Origin: Octopus sinensis
Taxonomy: Eukaryota
Length of the DNA stretch: 64,000 bases
Assembly (NCBI RefSeq): GCF_006345805.1
Contig: NC_043019.1
Coordinates: 18,413,360-18,477,359, forward strand
Reading direction: 5' to 3'
Translations under genes and position numbers: made by a program
The notes under the pieces: generated by a model
Seen by the model: the letters and a program-made list of their open reading frames with translations, nothing else
What the model was told of the DNA's origin: nothing
Databases searched by the model: none
Part shown: piece after piece, positions 9,451 to 43,067 of the stretch
Layout of the letters: each line of letters opens with the position of its first letter
How positions within the stretch are numbered: position 1 is the first letter of the stretch

Positions 9451-9483
<33 letters not shown>

Positions 9484-9769
9484 GCACATACATGTACAGA
9501 AAGAGTGAAGTTAGGAACAAAACCTATTGTATGCAATATAGACAAAGACCATTCTTTCTTATTTTCAGGCTGCTGTTTCTAGCAGGTTGAATGGCTGTAT
9601 AGAGCATTCTTTACTGGCTTGAATAGAGTTATTATTACATGTTTATGAGTGTAATACACACACACATGTGGTGTTTGTATTTTATAAACAGGCTTCTTTC
9701 AGTTTGTCAACCGAATCCACTTCCAATATATTTTATGCAGTCATAGATTACGGCTGGCCAGAAAGTTAC

Positions 9770-9820
9770 CACTGGTCTTGTGTCTGTTTTCTTGCTCTTA
9801 GCAATATGTAGACAACCCAT
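9770..9820 (-). CDS. Candidate alternative first exon MGCLHIAKSKKTDTRPV
   Basis: ATG in ctcATGG context, in-frame TGA upstream, phase-0 donor GTG|GTAACT (weaker). Confidence 0.25.
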
Positions 9821-11604
9821 GAGACCTGCTGGTCAGCATTTAGCCTCTTTACTGCTGGAATACAGTCTTGGTTGGCAAGGTTGTGAAAAAAATACCCTGA
9901 AATGAAATTCTTCAAAGCAAAAACTCTTTGTAAGCAAGATGGAGTTATCTCCCTTCAGATGGTTCCAGTTGCAAGTGGAGAAGTCCATGTGTCCAACATG
10001 AATTTTCTCTCATTAGGGCACCAACTAAACATTTCACTTTAGAAAGGTTATGTGCTTCCAGACAGCAAGTCTAGTGAGTTGTCTATATCGTTAAGAGCAA
10101 TAATAGATGTGAAATCAATGATAACTTTCTGACAGGACATAACCAGTGAATACATTAACCCATTAACTTTAAAAAAAAAAAAATTTGTAGTGGCATCCAT
10201 GCCAAAACTGATACTTCAGCAGGATGTGGTCCTCTCACTCGTCAGATCCTGTCAACACATCCAACCCATGCCATCAGAGAAAGCAGACATCATCATCATC
10301 AAAAAAATAAAATCAACTTTTCTATGTTCATAAGGAATTTTCTGGGGCATTTTCTAAGGCTGGATGCCCTTCCTGTTGCCAACGTCACCTGTTTGCAAAG
10401 CAAAGAGATATTCTCTGATGACCAGAGATGTTTTCACAGAAGACTGGAAATGAAGGACACTTCTTGCTCGATGGTAACATTTACACAATGTCAAGTAACA
10501 CACACACACACACACACTGAAGTGATATCTCTGCCACACCACTATAGTTACCACTGCTACCTACCATCACCATAGCAACTCTCCCACCACCACCACACTT
10601 ATCCCTTTATTGTTTTCTTTGTGACAGACCTTGGAATATAAAACAAAACAAAAGAAAATCAATAAACCAACAGGATTAAGGCTGGAGGATAGAATTACAA
10701 ATCCCCCTTAAGCAGACATGAACTCTTATTAGTCACCTGTTGTTGTCATTACAAACTTTTTCTAGATGAGACATTAGCACTGACAAATCAGAAGTATTTC
10801 TATTGTTAATAATAATATTGCTTGCTTGTTGATTGCAGTCAAAAGCAGAACATTGTCAAGATTTTGGTGTCCTGTCAACGTACTAAGTTTTCGTTCTGTT
10901 TTCTAGAATATACTTTCAGTCTGTGCTTAATATTTTGCCCCTTTGACATTTATTGTATAAGTACAGCTCGGCATGTAGTTCTTGTATTGCATTTTTATAG
11001 GCAGGGGCCCCTCCGACGATATAACAAAAGAATGTTATTATGGAAGATAGTAGTTTGATGTCGTTCCAACAAACTGCTCAAGACAAAGCTAATTCAACTG
11101 ATAATAATAATAATAATAATAATGTTTGTAATATAACGATATTATGGGGGAAACAAGTTAGTTGATTATATTAACCCAAGTATGTAACTGGGTGACAATA
11201 AAATAAAGTACCAGTCATGTACTTGGGTTGATATAGTTGACTGACCCTTACCCAAAATTTCAAACCATATGCCTACGTTACAAATTACTACTACTACTGG
11301 TGGTGGTGGTGGTGGTGGTAGCAGCAGTAGTAGTAGTAAGATGAAGATGAGGAAAAAACAGCAGCAGCTTCATGCTTCTTGAAGCCAAATTAAATCTCAT
11401 TCCAGGTCAGCCCTGACTGTCCTGGTGTTAAAAGATGGATTAAAATAATTTGAAACAAGCACAGGAGTGGCTGTGTGGTAAGAAGCTTGCTTTCCAACCA
11501 CATGGTTCTGTGTTCAGTCCCACTACATGGCACCTTGGGCAAGTGGCTTCTACTCAGATCAACCAAAGCCTTGTGAGTGGATTTGGTAGATGGAAACTGA
11601 AAGC

Positions 11605-11649
<45 letters not shown>

Positions 11650-12156
11650 AAATAATATTTGTCTCTTTTTTATAGAAACAAAAAAACAGGGGGGTGGGGT
11701 CATCGCTGTGATGCACTTTCGTGTAATTGAACTGTGGTGGTGAGCTCCCGAAATAGCCATTGATGTATTTGTATTGACCTTGTGGAAAGTCTGTTTGCTA
11801 TGAACTTTAACCTACCATGGTTTTAAAAATTGAACTTTGGACGTACTTTGTATGAGGGGAATAAAAAACACTTTCAAAATATTTTAATCGTTTTTTATTT
11901 TATCTTAGTTTTTTGGTAGAATGGCACACTGGAATTTTTATGAATTTTTAGTCATTTATATTTACTTTTTGTTAGGCTATTCTATTTGTATTTTATTCGT
12001 ATATATATTTTTACCTTCTGTATTTTTATGTATGTGTATATATTTTAATATGTTTAAAAACCATGGTGATATTTACATATGATCAAATGTTTGAGGTATG
12101 GTGTTAGATATAAAGTTGACTCGAATTTAATGTTTGTTCTATGACCAATGTTTCTT

Positions 12157-12223
<67 letters not shown>

Positions 12224-12833
12224 ATATATATATATACGAGCAAAACGCCCCACCACCACCACCGTCCAATGGACAGTGCTGAGTTGTCAAACATTTAAAC
12301 CAAATTTTCTCAAAACAACTTGTATGACTGTCCCATAGGCTTCTCCTTTGAGAAACACTGATTTAACCTAAATTTGAGACACCAGCAAAAGAAGAAATAA
12401 AGATAGACTTTTTTTTCTATTCCAAAGAAAAACGATTTTATTCACACAGATATGCAACCGAAGAGTTTAAAGTACCAGTAATGATAAGGCTGTTGACTGG
12501 GAGAACACAAACATGGTTTAAACAGTAAGCTTGGCAGGAAAGAAACGTGCCTTTAAGCAATACAAGAACAACAAAAAAAGGAAGGTGCAGTTATGTATAG
12601 GTTGATGGAAGAAAAGCAGGACAAAAACGATGCATGCAAATGGGTTAGCTGGAGGTAAATCTAGATGGAAAAGCATGATGAATTTATGAGATCATACCTG
12701 GGACAATAGTAAGTTTAACTGATAAAACATGTAGGAAATCAATGTGGGGCGATTTTTGATGAAAAGCAACCACCTAGGGAACTAACTAATTTAAGCTAAC
12801 TTACTTTACAGGATGTTCAAGGGCATGGAAAAG

Positions 12834-13072
12834 CTAGTGGCAACAGCTGATGTACTTGCGCGTACAAATGCACGTTCCCACGGCTTTATCGATCACATTC
12901 TCACCTGGAATTGATTTTTGTAATTTTTTCAAGACTTATACACGCCCTGATACCGTCAGTATCTACATATCAAATTTGAGCGCAATCGGATGGAAGATGC
13001 TTGAGATCCTAGAAGACGCACACACAGACAGACAGAATGGATTTTATATAATAGATATAGATATGCGTGCAT
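12834..13072 (-). mobile_element. Non-autonomous Helitron-like element
   Basis: Minus strand starts aTCTATATCTATTATATAAAA with a (CTGT)n tract and ends with hairpin TGTAC-gcgcaa-GTACA about 13 nt before CTAG. Confidence 0.45.
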
Positions 13073-14532
13073 GTGTGTGTGTCACCTATGCAATAAAATG
13101 TAAAGGTTTGTATTTTATTTTAGGTGAAAATTTATTTTTTCTTGTACACTACTGAAAAATAGAAATAGTAGTTTGTTGTAAATCATTTAAAATTTAGTGA
13201 ATACAACTCCTTCTACCACTTGAAATTACTAGTTTTGAGGTGGCTAAACTGTTGCATTACACCTTCATTTAGTAAAACTGTCAATACTATTGTAAGGTAA
13301 ATCTATTATTTCCAAAGTAAATATTTATTGATAAACAGAAAAATGTGAAAAAAACTAAAAATAGAAGTTATGAAAATATTCCTTATTGTGAATAAAAATA
13401 ATTCACCGTGACTTGTCATTCACCACTTTATGTTTGGCAGAGGCAAGTTATTGAGCTGTGAAGTTGTAAACAAAATTATTATTAAAAAATGTCTGCCACA
13501 TCTAGTGGTACTTTATTTCACTGATCCCCGCTCTACCCCAGAGAAAGGACGAGAGATGAAGTTGATCTGGGATGGATTTGAGTGTGAAGAGCTCAAAGAA
13601 ATGCTGCAAAACATTTTCCCCACACTCAAACAATTCTGCCACAAATATTACCAACCTATTTATTCAATATTACACACATATTTACATATGTGAAAGCTTT
13701 CGTATGGTTACTCAAACAGCTAGAAATACCAGTCAAATCTCATTCAATCACCCATAAAGACACAATTATACAGAGCTAGCAGAATATGAAATAGGATATT
13801 TTAAAAAGAAACATTTTGTTTTTGTTAAACAGCATAAAAAGATTACTTAACAATTGCTGAGAAAACAAACAAAATATCAAAAGTTTATCCTATTAAAAGG
13901 CAGGTTAAGTTCACATCTATTTTTTTCTGAAAATGGAGATAAGTTAACTTCTTAATTCATTCAAAGACTCATTTCATTTAAACTGAATATATTTTATATT
14001 AAAAAGGTAGCATTTCAAATGGGCAGGCAATTTCACACTGAAAATGTGGCCATCTGGCTGTCGGGTATTGAACTAGTACACATACATAAAGAAGTGAAGG
14101 TTGAGGATAGAATGTCAATGGGTGGAGCTTTTGGAATGGCTGTCAAACCTCAAAGGGTAGGAAAAGGGAGGGGTAGGGGCAAATACGTAAAAAAAACAAA
14201 CATAATAAATAAGTTTTTTTTTCATAATTATAATTTTCATTGTATAAATCACAAGAATACTATAATATATATTCTTTAAAAAATGGAGTATGGAAAACCC
14301 ACTCAGTTATTTGCTTATGAGTTAATGATAGGTATTCCAAAACACCACATGTTGGTATCCATAGTCTGCTCAGTCAAGGGTGACCTGGGCAAAACAAAAC
14401 CAGTTTACCTGACTAAAAGGTATCATGTAATTAAATACTTGCCAAACTCTTGTTTATGGGACTTTCCCATAGAGATCTAACATTAGGCAAGTTTAAATGT
14501 GTAGCAGATTTTTTCTTAAAGAAGACTGAATA

Positions 14533-15536
14533 TCTTTATATATAAAACTCTAGTTGTGTGAGTGTCTGTCCCCTTCGATTTAGATTCCTAACTCCTCCCA
14601 CATTTTGCGGTGCAGTTTAACCAAATTCGGGTATCTTATAGTCGTGATTCATATCGAGCCCGTCTGACTATTAGCGCGCGTCAACGATGAGTCTACGATT
14701 TTAAAAATAATTTAACATCATTTTTTATTCCATTTTAATGCATAAAATGCATCGTATGTCGATGGCGGCGGAGTTGGCGTCCACGCTCACAGCTGCACCT
14801 GTTTGCTTCTCCCCCTTCCCTCCCTCGTGAAGCTGTGGGGAAGGGAGTGTAAAGAAATCAACGTTGTAATGCGTTGTGAAGGAAACCAGCGTTCTTTTAG
14901 AACAACGACTTCATGGCTTGAAGACACCAAAACAAAAATGGCTAAGAAAGCCCGAATTTATAAGGGAAGTAACTCTCCAAAAATGCTTATATAGTTATTT
15001 CCCTTACAAACCCGAGCAACGCCGGGCGATACTGCTAGTCTATATATATAAAACTGTAGTTGTGTGATTTAGATTCCTAACTACTCCCACATTTTGCGGT
15101 GCAGTTCAACCAAATTCGGATATCTTATAGTCGTGATTCATATCGAGCCCGTCTGGGTATTAGCGCGCGTCTACGATGAGTCTACGATTTTAAAAATAAT
15201 TTAACATAATTTTTCATTCCATTTTAATGCATAAAATGCATCGTGTGTCGATGGCGGTGGAGTTGGCGTCCACGCTCACAGCTGCACCTGTTTGCTTCTC
15301 CCCCTTCTTCCCTCCCTCGTGAAGCTGTGGGGAAGGGAGTGTAAGGAAATCAACGTCGTAAAGCGTTGTCAAGGAGACCAGCGTTCTTTTAGAACAACGA
15401 CTTCATGGCTTGAAGACACCAAAACAGAAATGGCTAAGAAAGCCCGAATTGGCATCTATAAGGGAAGTAACTCTCTAAAAATGCTTATATAGTTATTTCC
15501 CTTACAAACCCGAGCAACGCCAGGCGATACTGCTAA
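14533..15536 (+). mobile_element. Head-to-tail dimer of a ~500-bp non-autonomous Helitron (14533-15038, 15039-15536)
   Basis: A|TC start, CCCG-agcaacgc-CGGG hairpin, CTAG end. The second unit starts TC directly after CTAG and ends CTAA|T. Confidence 0.85.
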
Positions 15537-16512
15537 TTAACTATAATAAAAGGTAACATTTTTCACGCTCCAGTCAGATTGGTAAACAGAAAGTAAAATA
15601 ACAAATGGAGTGCGAGTGAGTGACAGCCAGAGATGCTAAATGCAGGTGAACTGTGGTGAGAGGTTTTACTCTGCAGTAGCTGGTATTTTAATCAAAATTA
15701 AACTGCAAAGTTTATCAATTTCAAGTACATCTATGTGTGTGTGTGTGTGTAATTAAATATTGAACTCTTTTTTTTTCAAAATATTATTCATATAATATTT
15801 ATAAATTCTCTCTATATACTTTTGTTTTTAAAAATTTTTTGGTGTTAGTTGTTTTTCCATGATTGCGCTTCCTGAAACAAACCCTTATTTCTTTTTCCAA
15901 GTAAAGGTTAACAAAATTTACACATCTTCCAAACAGAAAATTGCTGATATGAAGTTGTCAACATCAATTCCAGCATTCTTTCTCACAAATGTAAGCATGT
16001 ATGTGCACACATGCACATGGATGGGCACCTTGGGCAAGTGTCTCTGGCCAATTAAAAGCCTTGTGAGAAAATTTGGTATGCAGAAACTGAAAGAAGTCCA
16101 TTATACACACATGATCCAAATCGGATGTGCAATCTATGTGGATGTATTTTCAAAACTTTCTCTGATTTAAAAAGCCACATCAGATGCTATGATGGTTCTA
16201 AGGTGTAGGAAAAGGGAGGTGGTCAAACTCTGCAGAAGGACCACCACACACACACACATTGCATAATAGTTGTAACCAAGTATCCCTGTCAAGCAAGTGG
16301 TGTCTTTTTTTTGTCTCCAATCTACTATGAAAGCATATCTGGCCATGACGAAATATTACCTTCCCTGGGAAATGGTGGAGGCTGGAAAGAAGGGCATCCA
16401 ACTGTAAAAAATCTGGCTGATTCATGCAAGCATAGAAAAGTGGAGGCTTCATATATACATATACACATATATATACATATACACATATATATACATATAC
16501 ACATATATATAC

Positions 16513-16543
<31 letters not shown>

Positions 16544-16703
16544 CATACATATATATAAATAGGTGAATGAATTATCCTATGTTTATTGTCAGCATGGAAA
16601 ATTCATTTAACCGAAACCTGGGTAGCAATTCACGTCAGAAACACGGTTGAAGCAACCTGTCCAAGGGTAGAAACTCCGGGTTCATGTGCAGAAATTTGTG
16701 TGC

Positions 16704-16973
16704 TGTATATGAATAAATGAAAGAATGGAGTCGAACGAAGATGTTAACAAAATTCCTTTACTCTCGACATATGTTTCGAAGACAACATGTTTTCATTCCT
16801 AAGGAATAAAGGGTGCATTATGTAATCTTCTCATCAGGAAAGAAAGGGAGCCTCTCTCGACAACAAGACAAACAAAAATTTCGATGAATGCCTACATGGT
16901 AAAAAAGCGATAATGAGGAAGGAATTTTGTTAACATCTTCGTTCGACTCCATTCTTTCATTTATTCATATACA
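16704..16973 (-). mobile_element. Penelope-like element terminal remnant: perfect 55-bp inverted repeats enclosing a hammerhead
   Basis: 16704-16758 is the exact reverse complement of 16919-16973. Confidence 0.7.
16761..16842 (-). ncRNA. Hammerhead ribozyme (type I, Penelope-type minimal stem III)
   Basis: Minus strand reads CUUUC-CUGAUGA-GAAGA...UCUUC-GAAA-C(AUAU)G-UC-GAGAG. Intact core, 5-bp stem I, extended stem II, palindromic stem III loop, GUC cleavage triplet at 16768-16766. Confidence 0.8.
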
Positions 16974-17180
16974 TATATATATACGTACATATATATATAT
17001 ATACATACATACATATATATATACATACATACATATATATACACATACATACATATATATACACATACATACATATATACATACATATATACATATACAT
17101 ACATATATACATATACATACATATATACATATACATACATATATACATATACATACATATATACATATACATATATATAC

Positions 17181-17221
<41 letters not shown>

Positions 17222-17237
17222 CATATATATATACATA

Positions 17238-17273
<36 letters not shown>

Positions 17274-17506
17274 CATATACATATATATATATACATATAT
17301 ATATATACATATATACATATATACATATATACATATATACATATATATATATATACATATATATATATACATATATATATATACATATATATATATACAT
17401 ATATATATATACATATATATACATATATATATACATATATATATATACATATATATATATACATATATATATATACATATATATATATAATACATATATA
17501 TATATC

Positions 17507-17537
<31 letters not shown>

Positions 17538-18066
17538 CTATATATATATACACTATATATATATACAATATAATATATACATATATATATACATATATAT
17601 ATATACATATATATATATACATATATACATATATATATATACATATATATATATACAATATATATACACATATATATATATATATATACATATATATATA
17701 CATATATATATATACATATATATATATACATATATATACATATATATATACATATATATATATACATATATATATATACATATATATATATACATATATA
17801 TATATACATATATACATACATATATATATACATATATATATACATATATATATACATATATATATATACATATATAATATACATATATATATATACATAT
17901 ATACATACATATATACATACATATATACATACATATATACATACATATAAATATACATACATATATATACTATATATAATATACATATATATATATACAT
18001 ATATATATATACATATATATATATACATATATATATATACATATATATATATACATATATATATAC

Positions 18067-18121
<55 letters not shown>

Positions 18122-18351
18122 CATATATATATACACATATATATACATACATATATATATATACATATATATACATACATATATATATATACATATATAT
18201 ATATACATATTATATATACATATATATATATACATATATATATATACATATATATATATACATATATATATATACATATATATATATACATATATATATA
18301 TACATATATATACATATATATATACATATATATATACATATATATATATAC

Positions 18352-18386
<35 letters not shown>

Positions 18387-18811
18387 CACATATATATACA
18401 CATATATATACACATATATATATACATATATATATATACACATATATATATATACACATATATATATATACACATATATATATATATACACATAATATAT
18501 ATACACATATATATATATACACATATATATATATACACATATATATATATACACATATATATATACACATATATATATACACATATATATATATACACAT
18601 ATATATATACACACATATATATACACACATATATATACATATATATAATATATACATATATATATATACATATATATATATACATATATATATATACATA
18701 TATATATATACATATATATATATATACATATATATACATATATATATATACATATATATATATATATTATATATATATACATACATACATATATATACAC
18801 ATATATATACA

Positions 18812-18843
<32 letters not shown>

Positions 18844-19163
18844 CATATATATATATACATATATATATATACATATATATATACATATATATATATACAT
18901 ATATATATACATATATATATAACATATATATACATATATATATATACATACATATATATATACATATATATATATATACATACATATATATATATACATA
19001 TATACATAATATATATACATATATATATATACATATATATATATACTATATATATATACATATATATATATATTACATATATATATATACATATATATAC
19101 ATACATATATATATATACATATATATATACATACATATATATATACATATATATATATACATA

Positions 19164-19204
<41 letters not shown>

Positions 19205-19279
19205 ATACATATATACATACATATATATATATATACATATATACATACATATATATATATATACATATATATATATACA

Positions 19280-19320
<41 letters not shown>

Positions 19321-19322
19321 AC

Positions 19323-19353
<31 letters not shown>

Positions 19354-19375
19354 CATATATATATAATACATATAT

Positions 19376-19407
<32 letters not shown>

Positions 19408-19463
19408 ATATACATATATATATACATATATATATACATATAAATTATACATATATATATACA

Positions 19464-19499
<36 letters not shown>

Positions 19500-19561
19500 C
19501 ATACATATATATATACATACATATATACATACATATATATATACATACATATATACATACA

Positions 19562-19597
<36 letters not shown>

Positions 19598-20199
19598 CAT
19601 ACATATATATATACATACATATATACATACATATATATATACATACATATATACATACATATATATATATACATACATATATACATACATATATATATAT
19701 ACATACATATATACATACATATATATACATATATATACATATATATATACATATATATACATATATATATACATATACATATAAATATACATACATATAT
19801 ATATATATACATATATATACATATATATATACATATACATATAAATATACATACATATATATATACATATATATACATATATATACATATATATACATAT
19901 ATATATATACACATATATATATACACATATATATATATACATATATATATATACATATATATATATACATATATATATATACATATATATATATACAACA
20001 TATATATATATACATATATATATATACATATATATATACATATATATATATATACATATATATATACATATATATATATATACATATATATATATACATA
20101 TATACATATATACATATATACATATATATATATACATATATACATATATATATATACATATATACATATATATATACATATATACATATATATATATAC

Positions 20200-20230
<31 letters not shown>

Positions 20231-20247
20231 CATATATACATATATAC

Positions 20248-20284
<37 letters not shown>

Positions 20285-20296
20285 CCATATATATAT

Positions 20297-20389
<93 letters not shown>

Positions 20390-20446
20390 CATATATATAT
20401 ACATATATATATATACATATATATACATACATATATATATACATAC

Positions 20447-20477
<31 letters not shown>

Positions 20478-20478
20478 C

Positions 20479-20523
<45 letters not shown>

Positions 20524-20561
20524 CATATATATATATACATACATATATATATATATACATA

Positions 20562-20595
<34 letters not shown>

Positions 20596-21867
20596 AATAT
20601 ACATATATATATACATACATATATACATACATACATATATACATACATATATACATACATATATATATACATACATATATACATACATATATATATACAT
20701 ACATATATACATACATATATACATACATATATACATACATATATACATACATATATATATACATATATATATATACATATACATATACATACATATATAT
20801 ATACATATACATATATATACATATACATATATATACATATACATATATATACATATACATATACATATATATACATATACATATATATACATATACATAT
20901 ACATATATATACATATACATATATATACATATACATACATATATATATATACACATACATATATATATACATACATATATATATACATACATATATATAC
21001 ATATATATATACATATATATATATACATACATATATATATACATATATATATATACATACATATATATATACATACATATATATATACATACATATATAT
21101 ATACATACATATATATATACATACATATATATATACATACATATATATATACATATATATATACATACATATATATATACATATATATATACATATATAT
21201 ATATACATATATATATACATACATATATATATACATACATATATATATACATATACATATATACATACATATATACATATATATACATATACATATATAT
21301 ATACATATACTATATATATACATACATATATACATATATATATACATATACATATATATACATACACATATACATATATATACATATACATACATATATA
21401 TATATACACATACATATATATATACATACATATATATATACATACATATATATATACATATATATACATATATATATATACATACATATATATATACATA
21501 TATATATATACATACATATATATATACATACATATATATATACATACATATATATATACATACATATATATATACATACATATATATATACATATATATA
21601 TACATACATATATATATACATATATATATATACATACATATATATATACATATATATATACATACATATATATATACATATATATATACATACATATATA
21701 TATACATACATATATATATACATACATATATACATACATATATACATATATATATACATATACATATATATATACATATACATATATATATACATACATA
21801 TATACATATATATATACATATACATATATATATACATACACATATACATATATATATATATATACAT
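16974..21867. repeat. ~4.9-kb compound (TA)n/(TACA)n microsatellite array
   Basis: Almost exclusively A/T/C on the + strand; the source of the poly-Y/I/M/C/V ORFs. Confidence 0.97.
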
Positions 21868-22790: not shown

Positions 22791-22800
22791 ACATATATAT

Positions 22801-24821: not shown

Positions 24822-24896
24822 ATATATATATACATATATATATATATATACATACATATATATATATATATACATACATACATACATATATACATA

Positions 24897-25312: not shown

Positions 25313-25330
25313 ATATATATATATATATAT

Positions 25331-28300: not shown

Positions 28301-28392
28301 CGATGAAGCCTTCTGGCTTCACAGACCCCAGTTGAACCGTCCAACCCATGCTAGCATGGAAAACGGACGCTAAACGATGATGATGATGATGA
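25331..28392 (+). mobile_element. RTE-clade LINE copy B, 5'-truncated, nonsense codon in YADD
   Basis: APE C-terminus (SQIDYIL, QHRLVVSDF), RT (KAPGPSG, NYRGIKLL, FVDMEKAFDRVP, VHQGSVLSP), PHD-like finger, (GAT)n tail. Confidence 0.93.
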
Positions 28393-28407
28393 AATATATA
28401 TATATAT

Positions 28408-31400: not shown

Positions 31401-31477
31401 CAGACCCCAGTTGACCCGTCCAACCCATGCTAGCATGGAAAACGGACGCTAAACGATGATGATGATGATGATGATGA
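28408..31477 (+). mobile_element. RTE-clade LINE copy C, 5'-truncated and frameshifted, with a 12-unit 3' UTR minisatellite
   Basis: Near-identical to copy B; ~61-bp units at 30570-31300; (GAT)n tail. Confidence 0.93.
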
Positions 31478-31943
31478 AAATATTACATTTTATAAAGGGC
31501 TTAGTAAAATAAATTACTTTGCCACATACTGAACTCATTAGAAATAGCAGCCAAAAAAATTTTTTTTAGCCATTTCTAATACTTAAAGAAAATTTCTCTC
31601 AGATAGTGTTTACTCAAAATAACCCACGAAGGTATGGGGGTAAAAACATTAAAAAATCACAAGTGCAAAGATTATTTGAGAACGTACGTTTCTAGATCAG
31701 CCAAATACAATTCGACATTTCTTTCGTCAGCTCAAAATTTCTTAATTCGGATTTGTAAACACTGAAAGTAGGAGCATACCCTTTTGGCGACTTTTCACCT
31801 CCGAAGATCCGTTCAAACTAACAGTGCCAACAAATTCAAAATATGCAAGCGAAGAATTACTGCCCTCCCTTTCCACCCACGTGGGCTAAAACTAGCAAAC
31901 ACCATGTTTTATTGGTGAAAACCGAAGCATTAAACAGAGAGAA

Positions 31944-32590
31944 ATGAATTATAATTTCAACAATTTCAACAAGATGAGAAAGGGCCAGTTTTTATCCCCA
32001 GCCATCAAAGGCAAAAGGAAAGACTGTGCTACAAAGCTTTTGAACAAACTCAAGCATCTCCTCCGACCAAACATGATTTGGTTTTTCTCAGTCAAGATAA
32101 ATTTTTTGCCAGGATCAGATGGTGAAGACACAGAGCAACTGTTGGCTTGCTGTGTCCCCAAAACATATACTGAGAGTGAAAAAAAAATCAAACATCCAGT
32201 CAACACCATGGTGTTTGGAGCAATCACTTTCTACACCCCTAACATCTGGCCACCTAACTCCCCAGACTGCAACCCCCTTGATTATTATGTGTGGGGGCTA
32301 GTTGAGCAAGAGACCAACACAACTCCTTCTAACACCAAAGTTGAACTGTAGGCAAGGATTATGGCAGCATTGACCAACTTAAACAAGGAACCATCCAGAA
32401 GAGTTACTGGAGATTCCAAAGTCATCTGGAGGCCGTGGTTGAAGCCAATGGCGATTATATTGGAGAAATTTACTCTTCAGTATTTCAAGATATTTTTATA
32501 TAATTTTGGTGAATATATCTGTTAAAATGAGATGTCAGTGTTATTTTCATTTTTGCATAATTTAGACAACAATTTATTCATCGCAAAACC
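31944..32590 (+). mobile_element. Tc1/mariner-superfamily (maT-like) transposase remnant, internally deleted
   Basis: IWFFS and WPPNSPDCNPLDYYVWG motifs; right end followed by TA. Confidence 0.75.
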
Positions 32591-32685
32591 TATATATACA
32601 TATATATATATACCGGAGTAAATACATAAATGTGAAACAAGGTGGAAAAAAGGGTACTCAAATACCAGTGGTAGAGTAATAGGCT

Positions 32686-32777
32686 TTATTTAAAGCAGCA
32701 GAAAATTCAAGAAAACCTGTTACTCTGAGTTTCACGGGAGTAAAAGGTTTTGTTGAATTTTCTGCTGCTTTAAATAA
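32686..32777 (-). mobile_element. Short inverted-repeat remnant with the 3' half of a hammerhead (GAAAC-UCAGA-GUA)
   Basis: 33-bp arms 32686-32718 and 32745-32777 with one mismatch; flanked by (TA)n. Confidence 0.45.
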
Positions 32778-34362
32778 TATATATATATATATCAATCATC
32801 TAGGCATAGCTATACTAATAACTGATGTTAGAAGTCAATACACTTATTCTTCAGAAGAAAGTATTAGTTGGGTGAAAGAGCTTAATACGAAATTAAATAA
32901 CAAAAGAACAGGAAATTATGTTATGACCTTCATTAGCGCTTACAGTTGTCTCTGCTGTACGACGCAATGTGTTCAGAGCTGAGTGCACGTGCCTCACCTT
33001 ATAGCTTCCTCAGAGCTTAACATACTATAAAAAAATATATTACGTAGACAACAATATTTCCAACCAAGACGTTACAACCGTATCTGATTGTTCAAGTGCT
33101 TCAATTCTGTGACCAGAACATGTTTGCTTAAATGCTGAGATTTAGCAGTGGTTTCATGAACCGTTTTGATGCACCATTTTCTATCATTAGTAAAACAGTC
33201 GGCATTTTTGACGACACAGGTATGCTAGTGAAATAATAATCAGTGCTGTAGGTAGTATGTGCTACCGGGGGCAGCCTTCGAATTTGCCGCCCCCTTTCCG
33301 AGACCCGCAGCCTATACAGTAGACCAGAAAGTGACACCCGGGACGGACTGTCCTTCCCCCCATAACATATGTGCGTGTGTGATTGTCTGTATCAAAATTA
33401 TAAAATAAATGAAGACTGCAGTGAACACCATATTTGGTAACCTTTACGTGAAGCGGTGGTCTTCATTATAATAACCACCTTAGAATCGCCTGAATGATGG
33501 GGGTCTAGAGCGAACCCTAGAAAGTTGGTCGAAATATTCTGATAATCCTTCGATATTGGTACATAATGTCATTCACAGGCACAACTTTCCTTCGTGACAT
33601 AAATAAAAGGGCAAGGCTGAAAAACATCGTGTTCCGACACCGACACTGTAGACCAACACCGAAGTAGGGCCAGTTTTCTACGGCTATAGCTGTATATAAT
33701 AATTGGCTCACCTTTATTCTTGATTAAAAAATATATCTTAAAGATTCTTAAAAAATAAACACAGTTATAGCTCAATGCCAGTTACCTATACAGAATTGTT
33801 ATACCTGTACAAAACAATCCACACTCATAACTGAAAGATGACAGTAATGTACGATTAAAATTGATATTTACCGTGAGATAAGATAGGAACATTTGTAACT
33901 AGAATATGTTCGGTTAAATTAGTTTATGAATGTTTAATTGCAATTACCGGTGAGATGAAGAGAAAAGACTATATCAAACTATGACTGAGATCACCTCAGT
34001 AGAATACCATTTTACTGAAGGTTGATTAATACATTACTCTGAGATCGTGTGCTGGAACGAAAACAATTGCCGCATGGAAGGTGTTTATAAACCATTTAAG
34101 AAACACACAAAAGCCGTTCGATTCACTTCAACATTTAAGTTTAATTTGTCAAAATATTTTCGTCGCTTTAAGACCGCGACCTGTTCACTGACAAAAATCC
34201 GTGCTGCATCGTGTTTTTATATATATATATATATATATATATTGAAGCTAAACCCCTTATGGGCGGGAAACCTAAAGTAATCCCATAAAATGGCCTTCCC
34301 CATTTTTAATATTATGTATATATATTTATATATATAAATTCCCGGGGTCCTAGACGCTGAAA

Positions 34363-34575
34363 TACTACTTAAGAACAGTGATCCTGGTGCGCGCACTCGC
34401 GCAAGCTAGTCATGACTAGTTGATCCTTACTTTGTGTTTTTGTATTTTATTTACTTTGTTTAAAAAATTATTTATTTTGTGTTTTATTTACTTTGCAAGG
34501 TAGTCGTTGTAGGATCGACTGGTCACGACTAGCTAGCACGGATGCGCGCACCGGGACCACTGTTCTCAAGTAGTA
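34363..34575. mobile_element. MITE with ~66-bp imperfect terminal inverted repeats
   Basis: tactacttaagaacagtgatcctggtgcgcgca... is mirrored by ...tgcgcgcaccgggaccactgttctcaagtagta; CTGAAA occurs on both flanks. Confidence 0.7.
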
Positions 34576-35300
34576 CCTGAAATATCTACATTCTACGAAT
34601 TCTGAAAATCTCTCTCTCTCCCCACACACAGAAGTGTATATGAGTGAAATTGTGTTTATTCATGCGTGTGAGATTATACACCCGTCTTTATTCGTAGGTG
34701 TGTGTAGATATATACACACACACACATCCATAGGCATGAACAAAACACGCACCGGTTTTGAATAAATGCACTAATTGCTGCATGAACAAATCTATCCACC
34801 CCTTTCTATTACCAAAGGGTAAAATAACTCCCAAGAGTATTGTGCTAAAAAAAAACACATTACCACATCATCTTCATTTAAACTACTTATATTTGATTCC
34901 ATTTTTTAATGTTTACATATTTTCCACAAGACATTAATTTCCATCATGAACGTAAATATTCAGACAGGATCAGTAGAATGATACGATCTGACAAGAATGG
35001 ACCCTTCAAGATATAACCCATCCGAGGGGCTTCTATAATTTCTTTACAAGCCACTCGGTCATTATATCATCAAGATGAATTTCTAAAATAATTGTTAACG
35101 TCATTTTATCTATTTCCCGTTGTTTGTAAATGTGTGAAGTTTTTAAGAAGGAAAAAAGATACGGAATCCCTCACGAATATATCAATAAGGTATATATATA
35201 TATAGGCTAATGTATATACTGAGTATATTAATTAAAATATAAAACCAGAAAGTTTAGTAAAAGAGATGGAATAATCGGACAGATGGAGACGAAAACTTAC

Positions 35301-35333
35301 CATCGCGCTCAGCTCTTTAACACGTATTCCTGG
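35301..35333 (-). CDS. Candidate small exon ending in ATG (PGIRVKELSAM); alternative start or internal cassette exon of the GPX4-like gene
   Basis: Pyrimidine tract then aatcag|CCA...GCGATG|GTAAGT: consensus donor directly after an ATG, phase 0. Confidence 0.4.
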
Positions 35334-35370
35334 CTGATTGATGTGAATACAAAGATAAAGTGTGCGCGCG

Positions 35371-35408
<38 letters not shown>

Positions 35409-38064
35409 CAAATGATTATATAGCTATGTGCGTAGAAAGAGATATAAATAGAGAGAGAATATATGCAGGAAGAGTGAAAATGTGAGAGAGACAGAGAGAG
35501 GAAAAAAGATGCAGCAGTGGAAAAGAAAGAAAAGATTAAAAGTAAAGCGAGAGAGGGATGAAAGGAAGAAAGAAGGATGTTATAAGAGAGTACGGGGTGG
35601 GGGAGGTGATTAATAGAGTGTAATAAAGTATGAGAGAGGGGAGGGAGATAAAGATATAAAGAGAGGGGGGAGGGAAGAAAGAGAGAGAAGCAATTTGAGG
35701 TCGGAAGAATTAGAAATAATAAAAGGTCGTGGTTGTGGACAAGAAAAATAGAAGCATGGATGGGAAGGACGGAGATAGAGGAATATAAAAATAGCCGGGA
35801 AAGAGGGGGAAAATGTGGAAACAATGGTTTTATTGAAAGAATGGAGATGGAAAAAGAGATGATGAGAGAGACGAGAAAGAAGAGTGGCCGAGTTAAAAGA
35901 AGGAAGAGTTTGTCCCACAACAAATAGTTTCTGTTAATACACCATGAAGTAGAATATAATATTCTTCCCGACTTCTCTTTTTATTAGGAGTTTAATTTCA
36001 AAAGATAAAAAATTGTTAGCTTTATATTCTTAATTTTTGGGAAAATATCCGAAATGTACATCAAGAGAACTACTGCGTGATTGTCTGACCCGCTAGAAAT
36101 AGCAGTCGAATCTTAGATTCACCATTTACATTGAATAATGTAAACCCTGTTACACGAAAATGGAACATCATAAATCATCGGTCGGCTTAATCAGAGCTGA
36201 GCCAAGACTGAATACAAACATTCTTTATAGTTATTGTTACTTAATCTCCGGTCAAACGTGATATCAAGCAAACATACAACCAGCAAAAGAGATCCAGTCG
36301 TGGCCACGTTGTCATTTTAAGGCGATGTAAAACTACATTATATAATATATCCTTTTTATTTAAGACGATCAGGTAAACTTCGAGAGAGATTTTGCGGGTA
36401 ATTCTAGTAGGTTTAATAACCACAGACTCCCTGAGTGGTTATCGTTTGCGTTGGTAAGAAACAAAAGCAATCATTTTATTTTGTGAACCCTTAGCACAAA
36501 ATCCCAAATTTTGGCGGGAAATGCATGATACAGAAATATGTAAGACCACACCATGGAAGTCTTGATAAGATGTGAAGTAAAGAGTCAAGAAATGTAGCAA
36601 GATATTCTTGATGAAATGTAGAGAATAGAATGGCAGAACGAGTGGCGGTCGAATTGCAATGTGTTTGTCTCGATACAAATCTTGTCAGTTTGAATATTGA
36701 CGATAGCGACTTTACCTTTCGTTCCTCAGTGGCCGATAAAATAAGGGACCAATAATAGGGACACACACACACGCACACACTTATAATTGATTATTCTCTT
36801 TGTCACAAAATGTGCTTACTTGTGCCGTCGTCTCTCACACAAAGAGAGGAACGTAAATAGAGAGAGAGAAGAATTTTAGTGGAAAGATGAGAAACGGAGG
36901 AAGGGGCTATAAAATAAGGATTGTAGGCGAAAAGTAAAGGAGAATTGTAGAGAAGAGAAAATAGTGAGGAGGTTAAGTTGGGTGAAAAGACAAAGGGAGA
37001 GAAATAGGTTGGGAAATAAAACCAGAATAAAATAATGGTTTCTCTTCTATGTGCAAGGCTAGCAATTTTGAGGGGAGGGACAAGTTGATACCTTCAACCG
37101 CAGTAGTGAATAAGTCAAAAGGTACTTTATTGACTGCAGTGGATTGAAAGATGGAGTCGACAGGGCAGGATTCGAACCCAGATCATAAAGAGCCAGAAGA
37201 GATACCACAAGGCATTTTCTGACAGTTCTGTCATTGCACCACTGTGAATAATTGTTTTGTTTTTTAATTTGGGAACAAGGCCTAAATTAATTAGAGTGGG
37301 GGTTGTTAGTTCCCCAATAGTTGATTGGTAATCGGGCCTGGAGAAATAAAAGGTAAAGTTGAACTCAAAGTACCAATCCACTTCCTTAAAATAACAACAA
37401 CGCTTGATTAGCCACAAGGGTTCACATTGAGGACAGTACAGGATGATAGCAGGTGAAAAAAGAAATGAATAAAAGCAAAGATTAATAAAGTAAAAACAAA
37501 TGGTGATAAAGTGTAGGGATGAGGAGCTGGAAGGAAAGGTCTGTTAAGGGGTTAGACTGGAACAGGAAGGATGAGAGAGGAAGTGATGGAAGGAAGACCA
37601 GGGGGTCATCCTCTATTGCCTTGGATGCTCAAGACGAATGGATGAGACAAGTGAGCAGATAGGGATGGGCACTAGCAGCTGTTATCGTTAGGTACGGGAG
37701 CTGGGCACAAGTTTTGGATTGAGTGCAGCTAAACAGCAAAACGACAGGGAAATTGTTTCCTTATTTTGCTGCTTTACAAATCCCTCACATAACAGTTTAA
37801 TTAAAGAGTTTCAGTTCAAAATGGAAAAAAAAAAGTTAAAACAACCAAAAGTAAAAGGAAATTTTAACTTAGAAAAAAAATTAAAAACTCTTCATCTCAG
37901 TCACCACTGCCCAGACCTGCATGGATACACTCTCTCATTTCAAGTGGTTGTGTCCAGTTATATAATATGAACTTATCAGCTGGTTTATATTTACTGAATC
38001 TTTCTGGTTTTGCACTTAAATATATTTCTTGTTCCACAAACGTTTCCAGGATTTTTTCAGCCAT

Positions 38065-38190
38065 ATCTTTAGCTGTCATTTACATAAGACTTACTTTCTT
38101 CAACAATTCTCCAGCTGATATCATAAGTTGCAGCTTTTTGTGTTAAAGACCAGATATAATTCATGAGTTTGTTGCATTTCGTTTATTAAT
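38065..38190 (-). pseudogene. Penelope-like GIY-YIG endonuclease C-terminal remnant
   Basis: Frameshifted KRNAT/KLMNYIWSLTQKAATYDISWRIVEESKSY resembles the NATELSKYIW.LK...I.W.I...Y segment of PLE ORFs. Confidence 0.45.
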
Positions 38191-39214
38191 GTTCCTGAAT
38201 GAAGAGGTGTGACTGTAAAATATTTTAACCAGCCTTTATGTCATTTTGATGTCACATCTTGGCACAAGGCCAAATATTGTCTTTCATATTCCATTCAGTT
38301 TCTCTTTCAGGTACAAGGCCAGCAATTTTGGGGAAGGGGTTAAGCCAATTACATTGACTCCAGTATGCAACTGGTACTTATTTTATCGATCCTGAAAGGA
38401 TGAAACGCAAAGTCAATCCTGGCAGCTAAATATTTTGCTCAGCAATGATTCAGTGTGCTCATCACCTTAAGCATTTATGTTATATTAACACAGCACTTAA
38501 TGGTGGTCGCAAGATCTAATGATTTAACCCACAGCTCATATCTGATGGCCTCTCTACTGCAAGATCCATTCACTGCACATGTGACATTGTCATGGGCTAA
38601 TATGATATGATCTGATTTATGCTAGTGGCTGAGCTGATACTAACATAAAGGCTGTGCTGACAGAACAATTTCCTATAGCTATGGCTAGTGGGGAAGGTTT
38701 TTGCCTGTTAGATTAGTGAGAAGTGAGGTGCAAACCAAGTAACCTCTTTTCTTTTATGGAAGGCTGGGATGGGAGTATAGCTAACTGTATCCTTCAACCT
38801 GTTTTCTTCTAGGGTGCTTGTTATAGTAAGAGGCAACAATATTAAATATCTCTTGACTGGAGATGACTTGAAATCCTCCTGACAATATTTATTTAGTTTT
38901 TGAATTCCAAAGTGAAACAGCATGAAGTCAGATTTATGTATACAAAGCATTTCATTTGAGTTTTTAAAGAGTTTCTGCAAGATAGTATTTAAATCTAGTG
39001 TCACTCCAGGAAATTAGCTCTGAACGGTTGGATTATGTCCTTCCTTTGCGGTGTAATGTATGCCTATTTGCATTTTTAGAGATAACTAACACACCATCTC
39101 TGTACAGGCCAAAATCTATAGAGAATTTTTTTTTTTATTTATATCTAGCATAGATATAACTTCATGGAAAAAATAATATCAGTCATTGATTAATAAAATT
39201 TTCTTTCACTTCAT

Positions 39215-42200
39215 ATGTGGCTGTACTTCTACCGGGTATCTACACTGGGGTACACGGTGGCCATGGTATTGGCACCAGAAATGATGAGGGAACTAGACTA
39301 CTGGAATTCTATGATGCATGTAACCTTTTAATCTGCAATACTAACTTCAGGAAGCCTGACTGCCACCTTATAACCTATCAGTCAGGAGACTCCGCTAGCC
39401 AAATAGACTTCATCCTCACCAGACAGCAGGATGCAGGGTTGCTCTTAAATACAAAGACCCTCCCGGGTGAAGAATGTACCCCTCAGCATAGGCTAATCAT
39501 TAGTGACTTTAGGCTTGAGGCCAGAAGGATTCCAAGAAACAGACCAATCCAGAAAAGATTTGGAAGCTAAAGAACCCTTCACATGGTCAGAGATTTAGGG
39601 ACATCCTCATCAAGAAATTTGATGAGAGGGAGGAGGAGCTACAGACATCGGACATAGAAGGTAGCTGGAAATTCCTACGGGACAGCTTGCTGAGTGCCAC
39701 AGACCAAGTCTGTGGATGGTGTAAAGTCCCTTCCAGACCTAGAGTTACATGGTGGTGAAATAGTGCAGTAGACAAAGCCATTAGTGCAAAGAGACAGGCC
39801 TGAAAAGCCTGGAGGGATGGGGGTAGCAGGGAACCGTACCAAGTAGCCAAAAGGGAGACCGGGCGGCATGTATACATAGCCAAAGATATAGCAGAAAAGA
39901 AGAAGTTTGCCAATGTCCAGCGACGTGAGGACCAAAGAACTGAGGTATTTCGGATTGCTAGACAGTGTGTGAGAGAAAATAGTGATGTTACAGGAGAGAA
40001 ATGTGTCCGCATGGATGATGGGGCACTTGCTTTTAGTGATGGTGAAAAGAAAGAGGCTTGGAGAAGCCATTATGAAAGACTGCTGAATGTGGAGAATGAA
40101 TGGGAGGAGGAGAGCCTGCCAAATGTTGACCCAGTAGAGGGACCAGCTATCTGAATAGACAGCTCCCTTGTAGTTAAGGCAATTAAGGGTATGAAACCAG
40201 GTAAAGCCCCCAGCCCATCAGGAATCACTGCTGAGATGCTTAAAACAGCTGGTTGTGTGGGCTATGGCCTAGTCACCCGCATTGTAAACCAGGTAGTTCA
40301 TAATGGAGTCATACCCAATGACTGGCGTAGCAGCACCATAGTCAACTGCTACAAAGGTAAGGGTAATGCTCTAGATAGAAATAACTACAGGGGTATTAAA
40401 CTGTTGGATCAGGTGATGAAGGTCTCAGAGAGGGTCATAACCCATCTCATTAGGGAGAGAATTTGCTTAGATGAGATGCAGTTCGGTTTTGTGCCGAGTA
40501 GAAGCACCACTGATGTTCCTGGTCCAACAACTGCAGGAGAAGTACCTAGCTAAAGATAAACCCCTCTACATAGCTTTTGTGGACTTGGAGAAAGCCTTTG
40601 ACAGGGTCCCCCGATCCCTTATCTGGTCGTCAATGCGGAAACTGGAGATTGACGAATGGCTAATAAGGCTGTACAGGCCCTATACAGAGAGGCTGTCAGC
40701 AAGGTTACAATTGGCAACGAATATAGTGAAGAATTCCGGGTAGAAGTAGGTGTACACCAAGGCTCAGCCCTCAGTCCCCTTTTATTCATCATAGTCCTCC
40801 AGGCAATAACAGAGGAATTCAAAACAGGTTGCCCCTGGGAGCACCTCTATGCTGGTGACCTGGCTCTCATAGCAGAATCATTACCGGAACTAGAAAAGAA
40901 ATTTTGTGTGTGGAAGCAAGGGTTAGAATCAAAGGGCCTTAGAGTAAATGTAGCAAAGACCAAAGTTATAGTAAGCAGAAAGGCGAACTCAGCACACACC
41001 CCCTCGGGCAGGTGGCCCTGCTCGATCTGTAGGAAAGGTGTAGGTAGAAACTCCATAAGATGTACCCAGTGTAAGCTATGGACGCATAAGAGGTGCAGCA
41101 ACATCAAAGGGAAATTAACTGATAAGATAGCTTTCATGTGCGGCAGATGCACAGGGACAATAGACACCACAGATACTCAGAAAACAGATTCCATCACACT
41201 CCAGGGGGAGAAACTAGAAGTAGTTGATAGTTTCCGCTACCTGGGTGACCAAATTAGTAGTGGAGGTGGATGCTCAGAGAGTGTCACCACTAGAATACGA
41301 ATAGCCTGGGCAAAGTTTAGAAAGCTCCTACCCCTACTGGCGACAAAGGGTCTCTCGCTCAGAGTGAAAGGTAGATTGTATGATGCATGTGTGCGAACTG
41401 CCATGCTTTACGGTAGTGAAACATGGGCGGTGACTGCAGAGGACATGCGTAGACTTGAAAGAAATGAAGCTAGCATGATCCGCTGGATGTGTAATGTCAG
41501 TGTGCGCGCACGACAGAGGGTAAGCACCCTGAGAGAAATGCTGGACATAAGAAGCATCAGATGTGGTGTGCAAGAGCGACGCTTGCGATGGTATGGTCAT
41601 GTACTGCGGATAGATGAGGAGAGATGTGTGAAGAAGTGCCGCTCCCAAACAGTTGAAGGTATCAGGGGGAGAGGTAGACCCAGGAAGACATGGGATGAGG
41701 TTGTCAAGCATGACCTCAGAGCGTTGGGCCTCACAGAGGCAATGACGAAGGACCGAGATCTCTGGAGATATGCTGTGACTGCAAAGACCCGGGCTGCTTC
41801 CTGCACCAGTCCCGCATAGCCCCCACCCATTCAAAGTACCTTGGATTCCAGAACATCCCGCTATGCTTGAGGAGACCTATTGAGTCAAGTACATGAACAT
41901 CGAAATAAATATCAATGGAAATAGTAGTTGTGATACCTGTGCTGGTGGCACATAAAAAGCACCATCCGAACGTGGCCGATGCCAGCGCCGCCTCGACTGG
42001 CTTCTGTGCCGGTGGCACATTAAAAGCATCATCCGAACGTGGCCGGTGCCAGACTCCCCTGGCACCTGTGCCGGTGGCACGTAAAAAGCACCCACTACAC
42101 TCGCGGAGTGGTTGGCGTTAGGAAGGGCATCCAGCTGTAGAAACATTGCCAGATCAGACTGGAGCCTGATGCAGCTCCTGGCTTCCCAGACCCCGGTCGA

Positions 42201-42249
42201 ACCGTCCAACACGTGCTAGCGCGGAAAACGGACGTTAAACGATGATGAT
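39215..42249 (+). mobile_element. RTE-clade LINE copy D (divergent subfamily, degraded)
   Basis: Same domain order as copy B with stops and frameshifts; YADD reads YAGD; (GAT) tail. Confidence 0.92.
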
Positions 42250-42911
42250 TAAAAGATGCTTTTCTCTTATTATCCTAAATAATACAACAGTTTAGAATGA
42301 TATCTGACATATATCGACAGAATATCAATGTTATAATGAGGTACAAAAATATTCCCCATGCTAACCATTACATGTATACCGGCTTTTTAATAATAAAATA
42401 ATAATAATAAAATTTTTAATAATAAAATCAGCTTACAAGTGGACTGAAAGAAAATGCTTACAAAACCCGGTGAGGTTTCGTAATTCACCACACAGTCCGG
42501 TCGTTGTTGTGGTGGGTTGGGTGCTTCAGTGACTCTGAGAGCTATGCCAGTGGAGCATAAACTGTTGGTAGGGCCTTCCCCATGCTGGATAGCTCAGAAG
42601 AATGAACGACGAAGTCAATGAGCTCCATGACATCTGGACTGAGAACTTAAATAATAAAATGAGTAAAGAAGTAATTACAACATGACAGTTGTTTTCGTCA
42701 TTCTAGTTTCTTCACAACGTAACCAATGTTAATAATTTTCAACTGAAATTTGTTAGCATACAAGTTTCGGAAGTTTTACACAGGGGACTGAATTACCTGC
42801 AACACCGTTACCAACCATGTGTTGCCGCATCAATTCAGTTACGAAACCATTCGACAGATTTGAAAGAAGATGAATTTTCATCTTGTCTTTTATATTTCTA
42901 TGTTCACTCAC

Positions 42912-43067
42912 CTTGGCATTTTTGTTTTCTCGTTTGCATTCTTCGTCTGTGCTTGAGCAGAAAGACGACGACGGACAACCAGCGCAATAGATGCCGATCG
43001 CGACGGCCGTCACCAGGCACAGCAACAACGTGGCCAGAAAGCGCGCCGTGGGGCGAGGGAAAGGCAT
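42912..43067 (-). CDS. Candidate first coding exon of the GPX4-like gene with signal-peptide-like N-terminus: MPFPRPTARFLATLLLCLVTAVAIGIYCAGCPSSSFCSSTDEECKRENKNAK
   Basis: ATG with an in-frame stop 4 codons upstream, a hydrophobic core, and a strong phase-0 donor AAG|GTGAGT compatible with the phase-0 acceptor at 5214. GC box and CCAAT boxes lie just upstream. The link to GPx is inferred. Confidence 0.6.

Follow-up and report, generated by a model that had tools for sequence, protein, structure and literature searches.

The stretch of Octopus sinensis DNA analyzed here (64 kb of contig NC_043019.1, referred to in its whole length as the window) carries, on its minus strand, four 5′ exons of a glutathione peroxidase (GPx) gene whose product is predicted to use selenocysteine (Sec) at its active site. 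The coding part of exon 1, which we refer to as c1 (42912..43067), is an open reading frame (ORF) of 52 codons that starts with an ATG at 43067 and ends in phase 0 at 42912, immediately before GTGAGT. It encodes a leader followed by a Cys-containing linker (MPFPRPTARFLATLLLCLVTAVAIGIYCAGCPSSSFCSSTDEECKRENKNAK), and an in-frame TAA is found 12 nt upstream of its ATG. The splice donor (42910..42911, AAG|GTGAGT) opens a first intron of 37,697 nt (5215..42911), which contains reverse-transcriptase fragments of long interspersed nuclear elements (LINEs), 61-62-bp tandem repeats, and a 4.9-kb AT-rich microsatellite array. Exon 2 (5147..5214; GFDFYSYKANDIDGNEVSMEKY(R), also GFDFYSYKANDIDGNEVSMEKYR) lies behind a good acceptor (ttttgcag|GGATTC, ttgttattattttgcag|), with the G of GFDFY at 5214, and two cDNA contigs, L003 and L004, map to it. 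Exon 3 (2876..3023) holds the catalytic Sec codon, a TGA at 2986-2984 in the context VASK-U-GLTD, and exon 4 (2257..2402), read from the sequence, is supported by cDNA mapping.

The last two exons of the gene (...NAIKWNFSKFL...EKDLEKLW) and the 3′ untranslated region (UTR) fall past window position 1. They can be followed near the end of an Octopus vulgaris chromosome record (OX597836.1, locus L002), which matches the window at 98.1% identity over 11.7 kb, a level that assigns the window to the O. vulgaris group of octopuses though not to that assembly, and places these exons at 15920-16004 and 17420-17454 of the locus, followed at 17532-17595 by an element resembling a selenocysteine insertion sequence (SECIS).

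In addition to c1, the first intron contains two short minus-strand segments that have been put forward as first exons of the same gene. The segment c2 (35301..35333) ends in an ATG at 35303-35301 followed by GTAAGT, and only this ATG would be coding; c3 (9770..9820; MGCLHIAKSKKTDTRPV) comprises 17 codons beginning ATG GGT TGT and is followed by GTAACT. The initial annotation had proposed that c1, c2, and c3 serve as alternative first exons directing one enzyme to different compartments. The coordinates and the reading on which this proposal was built are correct, in that all three candidates are present on the minus strand, end in phase 0, and join in frame to GFDFY at 5214. Their standing as exons, however, differs widely, as set out below.

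The enzyme class of the predicted product can be read from its conserved core. The assembled protein matches the Pfam family GSHPx (PF00255) at E=6.8e-43 and 145 bits, covering profile positions 1-105 of 108. Among structures in the Protein Data Bank, GPX4 is matched at 209 bits, ahead of GPx7 (125 bits), GPx8 (117 bits), and GPx1 (93 bits). The GPX4 alignment places query residues 5-156 on chain residues 37-189 (152 versus 153 residues) essentially without gaps and with no insertion of an oligomerization loop; in the GPx1 alignment, 155 query residues are stretched over 180 chain residues. Of the catalytic motifs, the Sec residue (TGA at 2986-2984) and NQFGSQEPG lie within the window, and KWNF, in the next exon, is read only from the 98%-identical O. 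vulgaris locus and the cDNA contigs. TGA occupies the same catalytic codon in the window, O. vulgaris, Argonauta, L003, and L004, with conserved GPx sequence continuing after it in each. Downstream, the 3′ UTR of four octopods, Argonauta included, retains a stem-loop of two helices, whose core is ATGA...GA, whose apical loop is rich in A, and in which three pairs are compensated. From this pattern of conservation, the stem-loop is very likely a SECIS element, although its Rfam scores stay under the curated threshold. On the alignments described here, the assignment of the predicted protein as a GPx4-type Sec peroxidase stands.

Support for c1 as the first coding exon comes from signals in the window itself. 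Scored with an approximate metazoan weight matrix, its donor reaches 12.5 bits, the top score among the ~1000 phase-0 ATG...GT candidates of the interval. The ratio of observed to expected (o/e) CpG peaks over c1 at 1.14-1.34 in 400-bp windows, the highest of the 64 kb, compared with a median of 0.48, and such a peak fits an unmethylated promoter. The CpG-rich patch, which covers exon 1 and extends upstream of it (42801..43300), is likely to be the promoter and transcription start region, although its promoter function is inferred. It contains a TATA-like TATAAA at 43081-43076, a 4-codon upstream ORF at 43091-43077, and two 41-bp direct repeats with ATTGG on either side of a (CACACT)n microsatellite.

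Orthologous gene models provide a further line of support. The c1 peptide aligns end to end with the N terminus of the Octopus bimaculoides model A0A0L8HRV8 (P0133), at E=9e-15; this model, a member of the same 90% cluster as the O. vulgaris model, starts with MHWTRPTTRFLVTVLLFLVTPVVTG...DEECKQENKSPK|GFDFY (MHWTRPTTRFLVTVLLFLVTPVVTGIDCSGPPSSSFWSSSDKSAMTDEECKQENKSPK, then GFDFYSYKAND). In the more divergent Argonauta hians, the model GAB1610731.1 (P0121) has a 62-codon exon 1 encoding a classical signal peptide (MLFYSLFPRLYVITVLCIVAPVVNC|EEEE). This exon ends GAC AAT AAG|GTGAGT, in phase 0 and with the same donor nonamer as c1, and is followed by a 15.6-kb intron whose acceptor lies one residue before FNFY (FNFYEYKANDIDGNEV; P0121/L001). 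Hence, the first intron of Argonauta has the same phase and position as that of the window. The two leader peptides align only at E=0.01 and retain little sequence identity. A Cys-Lys motif at the end of exon 1 (EC-K-x-E/D-N-K; 42950-42912 in the window) is conserved in the window, Argonauta, and the O. bimaculoides-like species.

The third line is a transcript. The Logan RNA contig L003 (SRR16213285, 972 nt) is a spliced cDNA from a related octopus; like L004, it was found via cluster members and derives from an O. bimaculoides-like species. Its nt 119-221 map to window positions 42995-42911 and nt 219-289 to 5216-5146, after which exons 3 and 4 follow, so that at the RNA level an exon of c1 type runs directly into the GFDFY exon. 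For the junctions that the three proposed first exons would form with exon 2, this means that the one from c1 (42912 to 5214) is present in the transcript of a related octopus, and that no N terminus of c2 or c3 type appears among the database proteins sharing exon 2 words. Among the gene models and RNA contigs available, which included no transcript from the species of the window, only the c1-type junction to the common exon was found (L003 and the models P0133 and P0121).

Orthologous models, the transcript of a related species, the donor and CpG signals, and the logic of the encoded protein are four independent lines of evidence, and on these c1 is a real exon. We consider it very probable that c1 is the sole supported first coding exon of a Sec-GPx4-type gene with a secretory leader and a 37.7-kb first intron, and that c2 and c3 are coincidental. 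According to this reading, exon 1 would supply a hydrophobic N-terminal leader and a short Cys-containing linker and would be spliced over the transposon-rich intron to the GFDFY exon. The product would be a monomeric Sec peroxidase, presumed to be enzymatically active, that enters the secretory pathway, its UGA being read as Sec with the aid of a 3′ UTR SECIS outside the window. The secreted or membrane-anchored Sec-GPx4 form proposed in the initial annotation thus finds support, across the whole 37.7-kb intron, in the orthologous models and the L003 junction.

Several observations weigh against this interpretation. The junction between c1 and exon 2 is seen in RNA of a related octopus, ~7-8% diverged in its exons, and the transcripts available included none from the species of the window. 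The first 118 nt of L003 are antisense mariner-like sequence rather than leader, and no transcript was found to combine the ATG, the leader, and the junction. The first base of contig L004 is the one immediately preceding exon 2; a break at this point could stem from branching of the assembly graph, with a second type of sequence upstream of exon 2 in that species. The uncharged stretch of the leader is long in the species of the window (residues 10-31), so that a signal anchor is possible. Finally, the SECIS_1 family of Rfam scores below its gathering threshold of 35 bits both in the O. vulgaris orthologue, where the element lies ~80 nt after the stop (30.2 bits, E=0.003), and in L004 (24.9 bits). 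The element is outside the window and is reported only under an E-value threshold; at the gathering threshold, Rfam gave no matches in the window or in L002.

The ends of the two RNA contigs deserve a closer description. On the reverse strand, L003 nt 1-118 read CQRWFQKFRTGNYSLEDDLRPGRSVKLDEDALQALVEEN, a helix-turn-helix (HTH) of mariner/Mos1 type (Pfam HTH_32 E=0.001, HTH_48 E=0.02). An apparent similarity of this segment to leader-coding DNA was rejected on the same ground, and the 5′ end of L003 stems either from a transposon inserted into exon 1 of that species or from chimeric assembly. In L003, the internal Met after the leader supplies the first ATG. At the start of L004, an intron (...cag) and a c1-type exon (...aag/...gag) would share two bases. 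The break may alternatively mark a third kind of upstream sequence or an assembly accident, and it offers no specific evidence for c2 or c3. In a database search with the peptide from leader to Sec, the Argonauta model was the only octopod match, and no ORF came from RNA contigs of either O. vulgaris or O. sinensis.

The c1 leader has the layout expected of a signal peptide, as the initial annotation had suggested. A rule-based check identifies an n-region with R5 and R9, then FLATLLLCLVTAVAIGI, then the small residues CAG|C; the Kyte-Doolittle mean is 2.75 over residues 10-24, and the apolar core spans 15-19 residues. This n-h-c layout and the hydrophobicity are kept in O. bimaculoides and Argonauta despite the diverged sequence. 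Judged by these features, a cleavable signal peptide is the probable reading of the leader, and a signal anchor the less likely one. The protein ends in ...EKDLEKLW, with no KDEL-type motif at its C terminus, and is therefore probably secreted or lumenal.

The alternative that survives best accepts c1 as the first exon and takes its leader either for a presequence directing mitochondrial import or for a type II anchor that stays uncleaved. The n-region of the leader carries two Arg but lacks acidic residues, the species of the window has an uncharged run of 22 residues, and the 19-residue Kyte-Doolittle mean of 2.45 is in the transmembrane range. Known relatives offer models for both versions, as mammalian GPX4 has a mitochondrial leader and GPx8 an N-terminal membrane anchor. 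In O. bimaculoides and Argonauta, however, the h-regions are shorter (~11-15 residues) and are followed by a c-region of Pro, Gly, and small residues and an acidic stretch (VNC|EEEE), which corresponds to the classical layout of a cleavable signal peptide. For a mitochondrial destination in particular, a continuous run of at least 15 apolar residues is atypical of amphipathic presequences. We regard a presequence or an uncleaved anchor as unlikely, though it is the least unlikely of the alternatives considered here.

To place c2 and c3 against chance expectation, we counted the minus-strand GTs of the intron that are preceded in phase 0, without an intervening stop, by an ATG, and scored them as donors with the matrix used for c1. 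The intron contains 1000 such candidates, of which 26 score at least as high as c3 (5.5 bits) and 2 at least as high as c2 (9.8 bits). In 200 first-order Markov simulations, the corresponding numbers were 753±39 candidates, 38.9±6.5 at the level of c3, and 2.25±1.6 at that of c2, with at least one c2-grade candidate present in 88% of the simulated introns. The opposite strand of the same interval yields 649 candidates, 53 and 5 of which reach the two levels. Two true donors of the GPx gene, CAG|GTTGGT and CAG|GTTTGT, do not exceed the score of c3, which makes donor strength a loose filter in this genome and chance candidates still more numerous than these counts convey.

Neither candidate gains support from comparison with other sequences. 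No N terminus of c2 or c3 type occurs among the database proteins that share exon 2 words, octopus RNA contigs being few there. Apart from microsatellite matches, none of c1, c2, and c3 belongs to a repeat family among the sequences compared. We also tried c3 as an internal cassette exon and rejected it, since the segment from its accagcag| (start 9825) to 9770 measures 56 nt, which is not a multiple of three, and no polypyrimidine tract is present. Both c2 and c3 are at chance level, coincidental combinations of an ATG and a GT in intronic DNA, and they are unsupported rather than disproved. The proposal of three alternative first exons for different compartments is consequently not supported: for c2 and c3, no homologue or transcript in their support was found among the sequences available.

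The stronger case of the two is that of c2, as a true alternative first exon contributing only the start codon of a leaderless cytosolic protein, MGFDFY..., much as exon 1 of GPX4 ends in an ATG. Its donor ranks second within the intron, its ATG has a G at −3 and, once spliced, a G at +4, and it is the sole ATGGTRAGT on both strands of the 64 kb. A leaderless form would, moreover, need a start other than one in c1, which, unlike its counterparts in Argonauta and O. bimaculoides, has no internal Met, and the break of L004 1 nt before exon 2 can be counted in favor of c2 as well. Against this stand the frequency with which donors of its grade arise by chance, given above for the simulated introns and the opposite strand, and the character of its surroundings, where a short (TA)n(CA)n(CG)n microsatellite upstream is the sole local peculiarity and the only promoter-like feature. 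No MGFDFY protein or transcript was found among the relatives sharing exon 2 words. Taken together, these points make c2 a highly improbable first exon.

A related proposal concerns dual targeting. An in-frame Met lies inside exon 1, 12-14 codons before its end, in both Argonauta (L001 10141-10186) and O. bimaculoides (P0133, residues 45-58), in the contexts SAM-TDEEC (L003) and STM-SGEGC (Argonauta). Exon 1 of the window lacks this second in-frame ATG, having a 6-codon deletion relative to O. bimaculoides. By analogy with mammalian GPX4, these relatives, though not the species of the window, could produce a leaderless form through internal initiation. A TATA-like motif is located only 9-13 nt 5′ of the first ATG in the window (43081-43076) and in Argonauta (L001 ~9985-9991), preceded in both by a CA-type microsatellite; if functional, it would place the transcription start downstream of the first ATG. 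Octopods might then have a GPx4-like dual targeting, in which the TATA-like motif may direct transcripts for a leaderless cytosolic enzyme from the exon-1-internal starts of Argonauta and O. bimaculoides, and in which the species of the window has lost the second ATG, with the c2 mini-exon perhaps replacing it as the leaderless start. If true, c2 would be a lineage-specific swap of an internal start for a new first exon. We give this scenario little credence, no more than c2 itself.

The case for c3, as a true alternative first exon of an N-acylated, membrane-attached form, starts from its MGC, which recalls the N termini of dually acylated proteins, and from the presence of its ORF, phase, and GT in a segment that is kept whole in O. 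vulgaris. For N-myristoylation, the PROSITE pattern PS00008 reads G-{EDRKHPFYW}-x(2)-[STAGCN]-{P}. The acylation site proposed for c3 in the initial annotation fails this pattern in the window (G-C-L-H-I of MGCLHI, with Ile barred at the fifth position) and again in O. vulgaris, where Cys3 is replaced by Arg, excluded at the second position; spliced c2 would fail as well, giving G-F, in which Phe is excluded. With a weak donor (GTAACT) matched or exceeded by 26 intron candidates against 39±6 by chance, CpG-poor flanks (o/e 0.14), a single O. vulgaris substitution in 51 nt that is the non-synonymous Cys3 to Arg change and accords with the neutral 2% divergence, no counterpart in the Argonauta intron where one was sought, and no database protein with its N terminus, c3 is hardly credible as an exon.

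The remainder of the window is largely occupied by repetitive elements, several of them within intron 1. The 4.9-kb AT-rich array at 16967-21869 is microsatellite-like (Tandem Repeats Finder period 4, 82% matches, with variants of TA/CA type) and produces long spurious ORFs on both strands. At least five fragmented LINE copies of one family, with RVT_1 and a PHD/C1-like zinc finger, are found at 25276-27798, 28547-30440, 39217-41819, and 51581-52165 on the plus strand and at 54091-55556 on the minus strand, several of them lying antisense inside the GPx intron. Beside LINE copies lie GC-rich (~63%), CpG-rich 61-62-bp tandem repeats (30572-31300, 22972-23164, 27952-28166, and 53721-53879), which are the other CpG-dense spots of the window besides exon 1. 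An apparently intact LINE is located at 58580-63367 on the minus strand, with an ORF2 of 1131 amino acids (Exo_endo_phos, RVT_1, zf-RVT) and a 460-amino-acid ORF1 upstream, and this element could be active. Also within intron 1, at 14920-15540, a ~490-bp unit (gcagtatcgccYggcgttgctcgggtttgtaagggaaataactatataagc...) occurs twice in tandem with a local CpG o/e of 1.25, and the O. vulgaris locus shows a duplication of the unit at its start as well.

Upstream of the GPx gene, the plus strand carries an ISXO2-like DDE transposase ORF (45444-46037, PF12762), a Pif1 2B-domain ORF representing a Helitron-like helicase fragment (57449-57970), and an ORF for a Treslin N-terminal domain (49172-49765, Pfam E=2e-17) that is part of a duplicated block (48353-51036). 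This last ORF matches, at 91% identity, a hypothetical protein of O. vulgaris (P0136) near the end of OX597835.1, with which 2.7 kb are shared at 94-96%. From this distribution, it looks like a duplicated subtelomeric gene fragment and not a functional Treslin gene. As a lead to the O. vulgaris counterpart of the c1/c2 region, this neighboring Treslin_N ORF was rejected, as its only match is the duplicated fragment on that other chromosome record.

The gene itself is an ordinary one that has been badly annotated: a Sec-GPx4-like gene with a secretory leader and a first intron that is long and filled with transposons. The UGA is mishandled in each of the three public models of the octopod gene. 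The O. vulgaris model CAI9739801.1 takes as its start an ATG in exon 2 that is out of frame and bypasses the Sec codon by means of a false intron around the TGA; the O. bimaculoides model A0A0L8HRV8 leaves out the Sec portion and, at the 3′ end, runs on into an intron; and the Argonauta model GAB1610731.1 ends at the UGA. The O. vulgaris GPx locus lies less than ~40 kb from the end of its chromosome record, which stops ~12.8 kb beyond L002 position 1. If the record is colinear with the window, then exon 1 may sit at or past the end of the assembly, and this may be the reason for the faulty O. vulgaris model. The main value of the present analysis accordingly lies in annotation, as a correct model has to include the leader exon, the very long first intron, the Sec codon, and the probable SECIS.

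Compared with vertebrate GPX4, the octopus gene shares the monomeric core, a TGA-encoded Sec, a SECIS-like element in the 3′ UTR, and targeting information in exon 1. It differs in that its leader is hydrophobic and of secretory type rather than a mitochondrial presequence, that an alternative first exon of the nuclear exon 1b type is unsupported, that the species of the window lacks a second in-frame ATG in exon 1, and that the first intron extends over 37.7 kb. Had the alternative exons held, they would mean an independent origin of GPX4-style compartment targeting, for which the evidence gives no support.

GPx7 and GPx8 resemble the predicted octopus protein in entering the secretory pathway, by a signal peptide (GPx7) or an anchor (GPx8), and in their monomeric GPx4-like fold. 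Both use Cys and carry C-terminal KDEL-like retrieval motifs. The octopus protein, by contrast, uses Sec, ends in ...EKDLEKLW, and scores nearer to GPX4 (209 versus 125 and 117 bits).

The closest parallels are found among the PHGPx-like proteins of invertebrates, which likewise place a GPx4-like core behind a poorly conserved hydrophobic leader. Such leaders are also present on the insect homologues P0014, P0015, and P0019; the insect members, unlike the octopus gene, use Cys and not Sec. Invertebrate PHGPx-like proteins with hydrophobic leaders have been described, among them a flatworm Sec-GPx (PMC2679728), and the platyhelminth members likewise use Sec and carry a SECIS, where the octopus gene has a SECIS-like element. 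The octopus gene differs from this group in its Cys-containing linker and in having its leader on a distant, separate exon. With it, cephalopods gain a secretory-type Sec-GPx4-like enzyme of a kind already known in flatworms and, with Cys in place of Sec, in insects.

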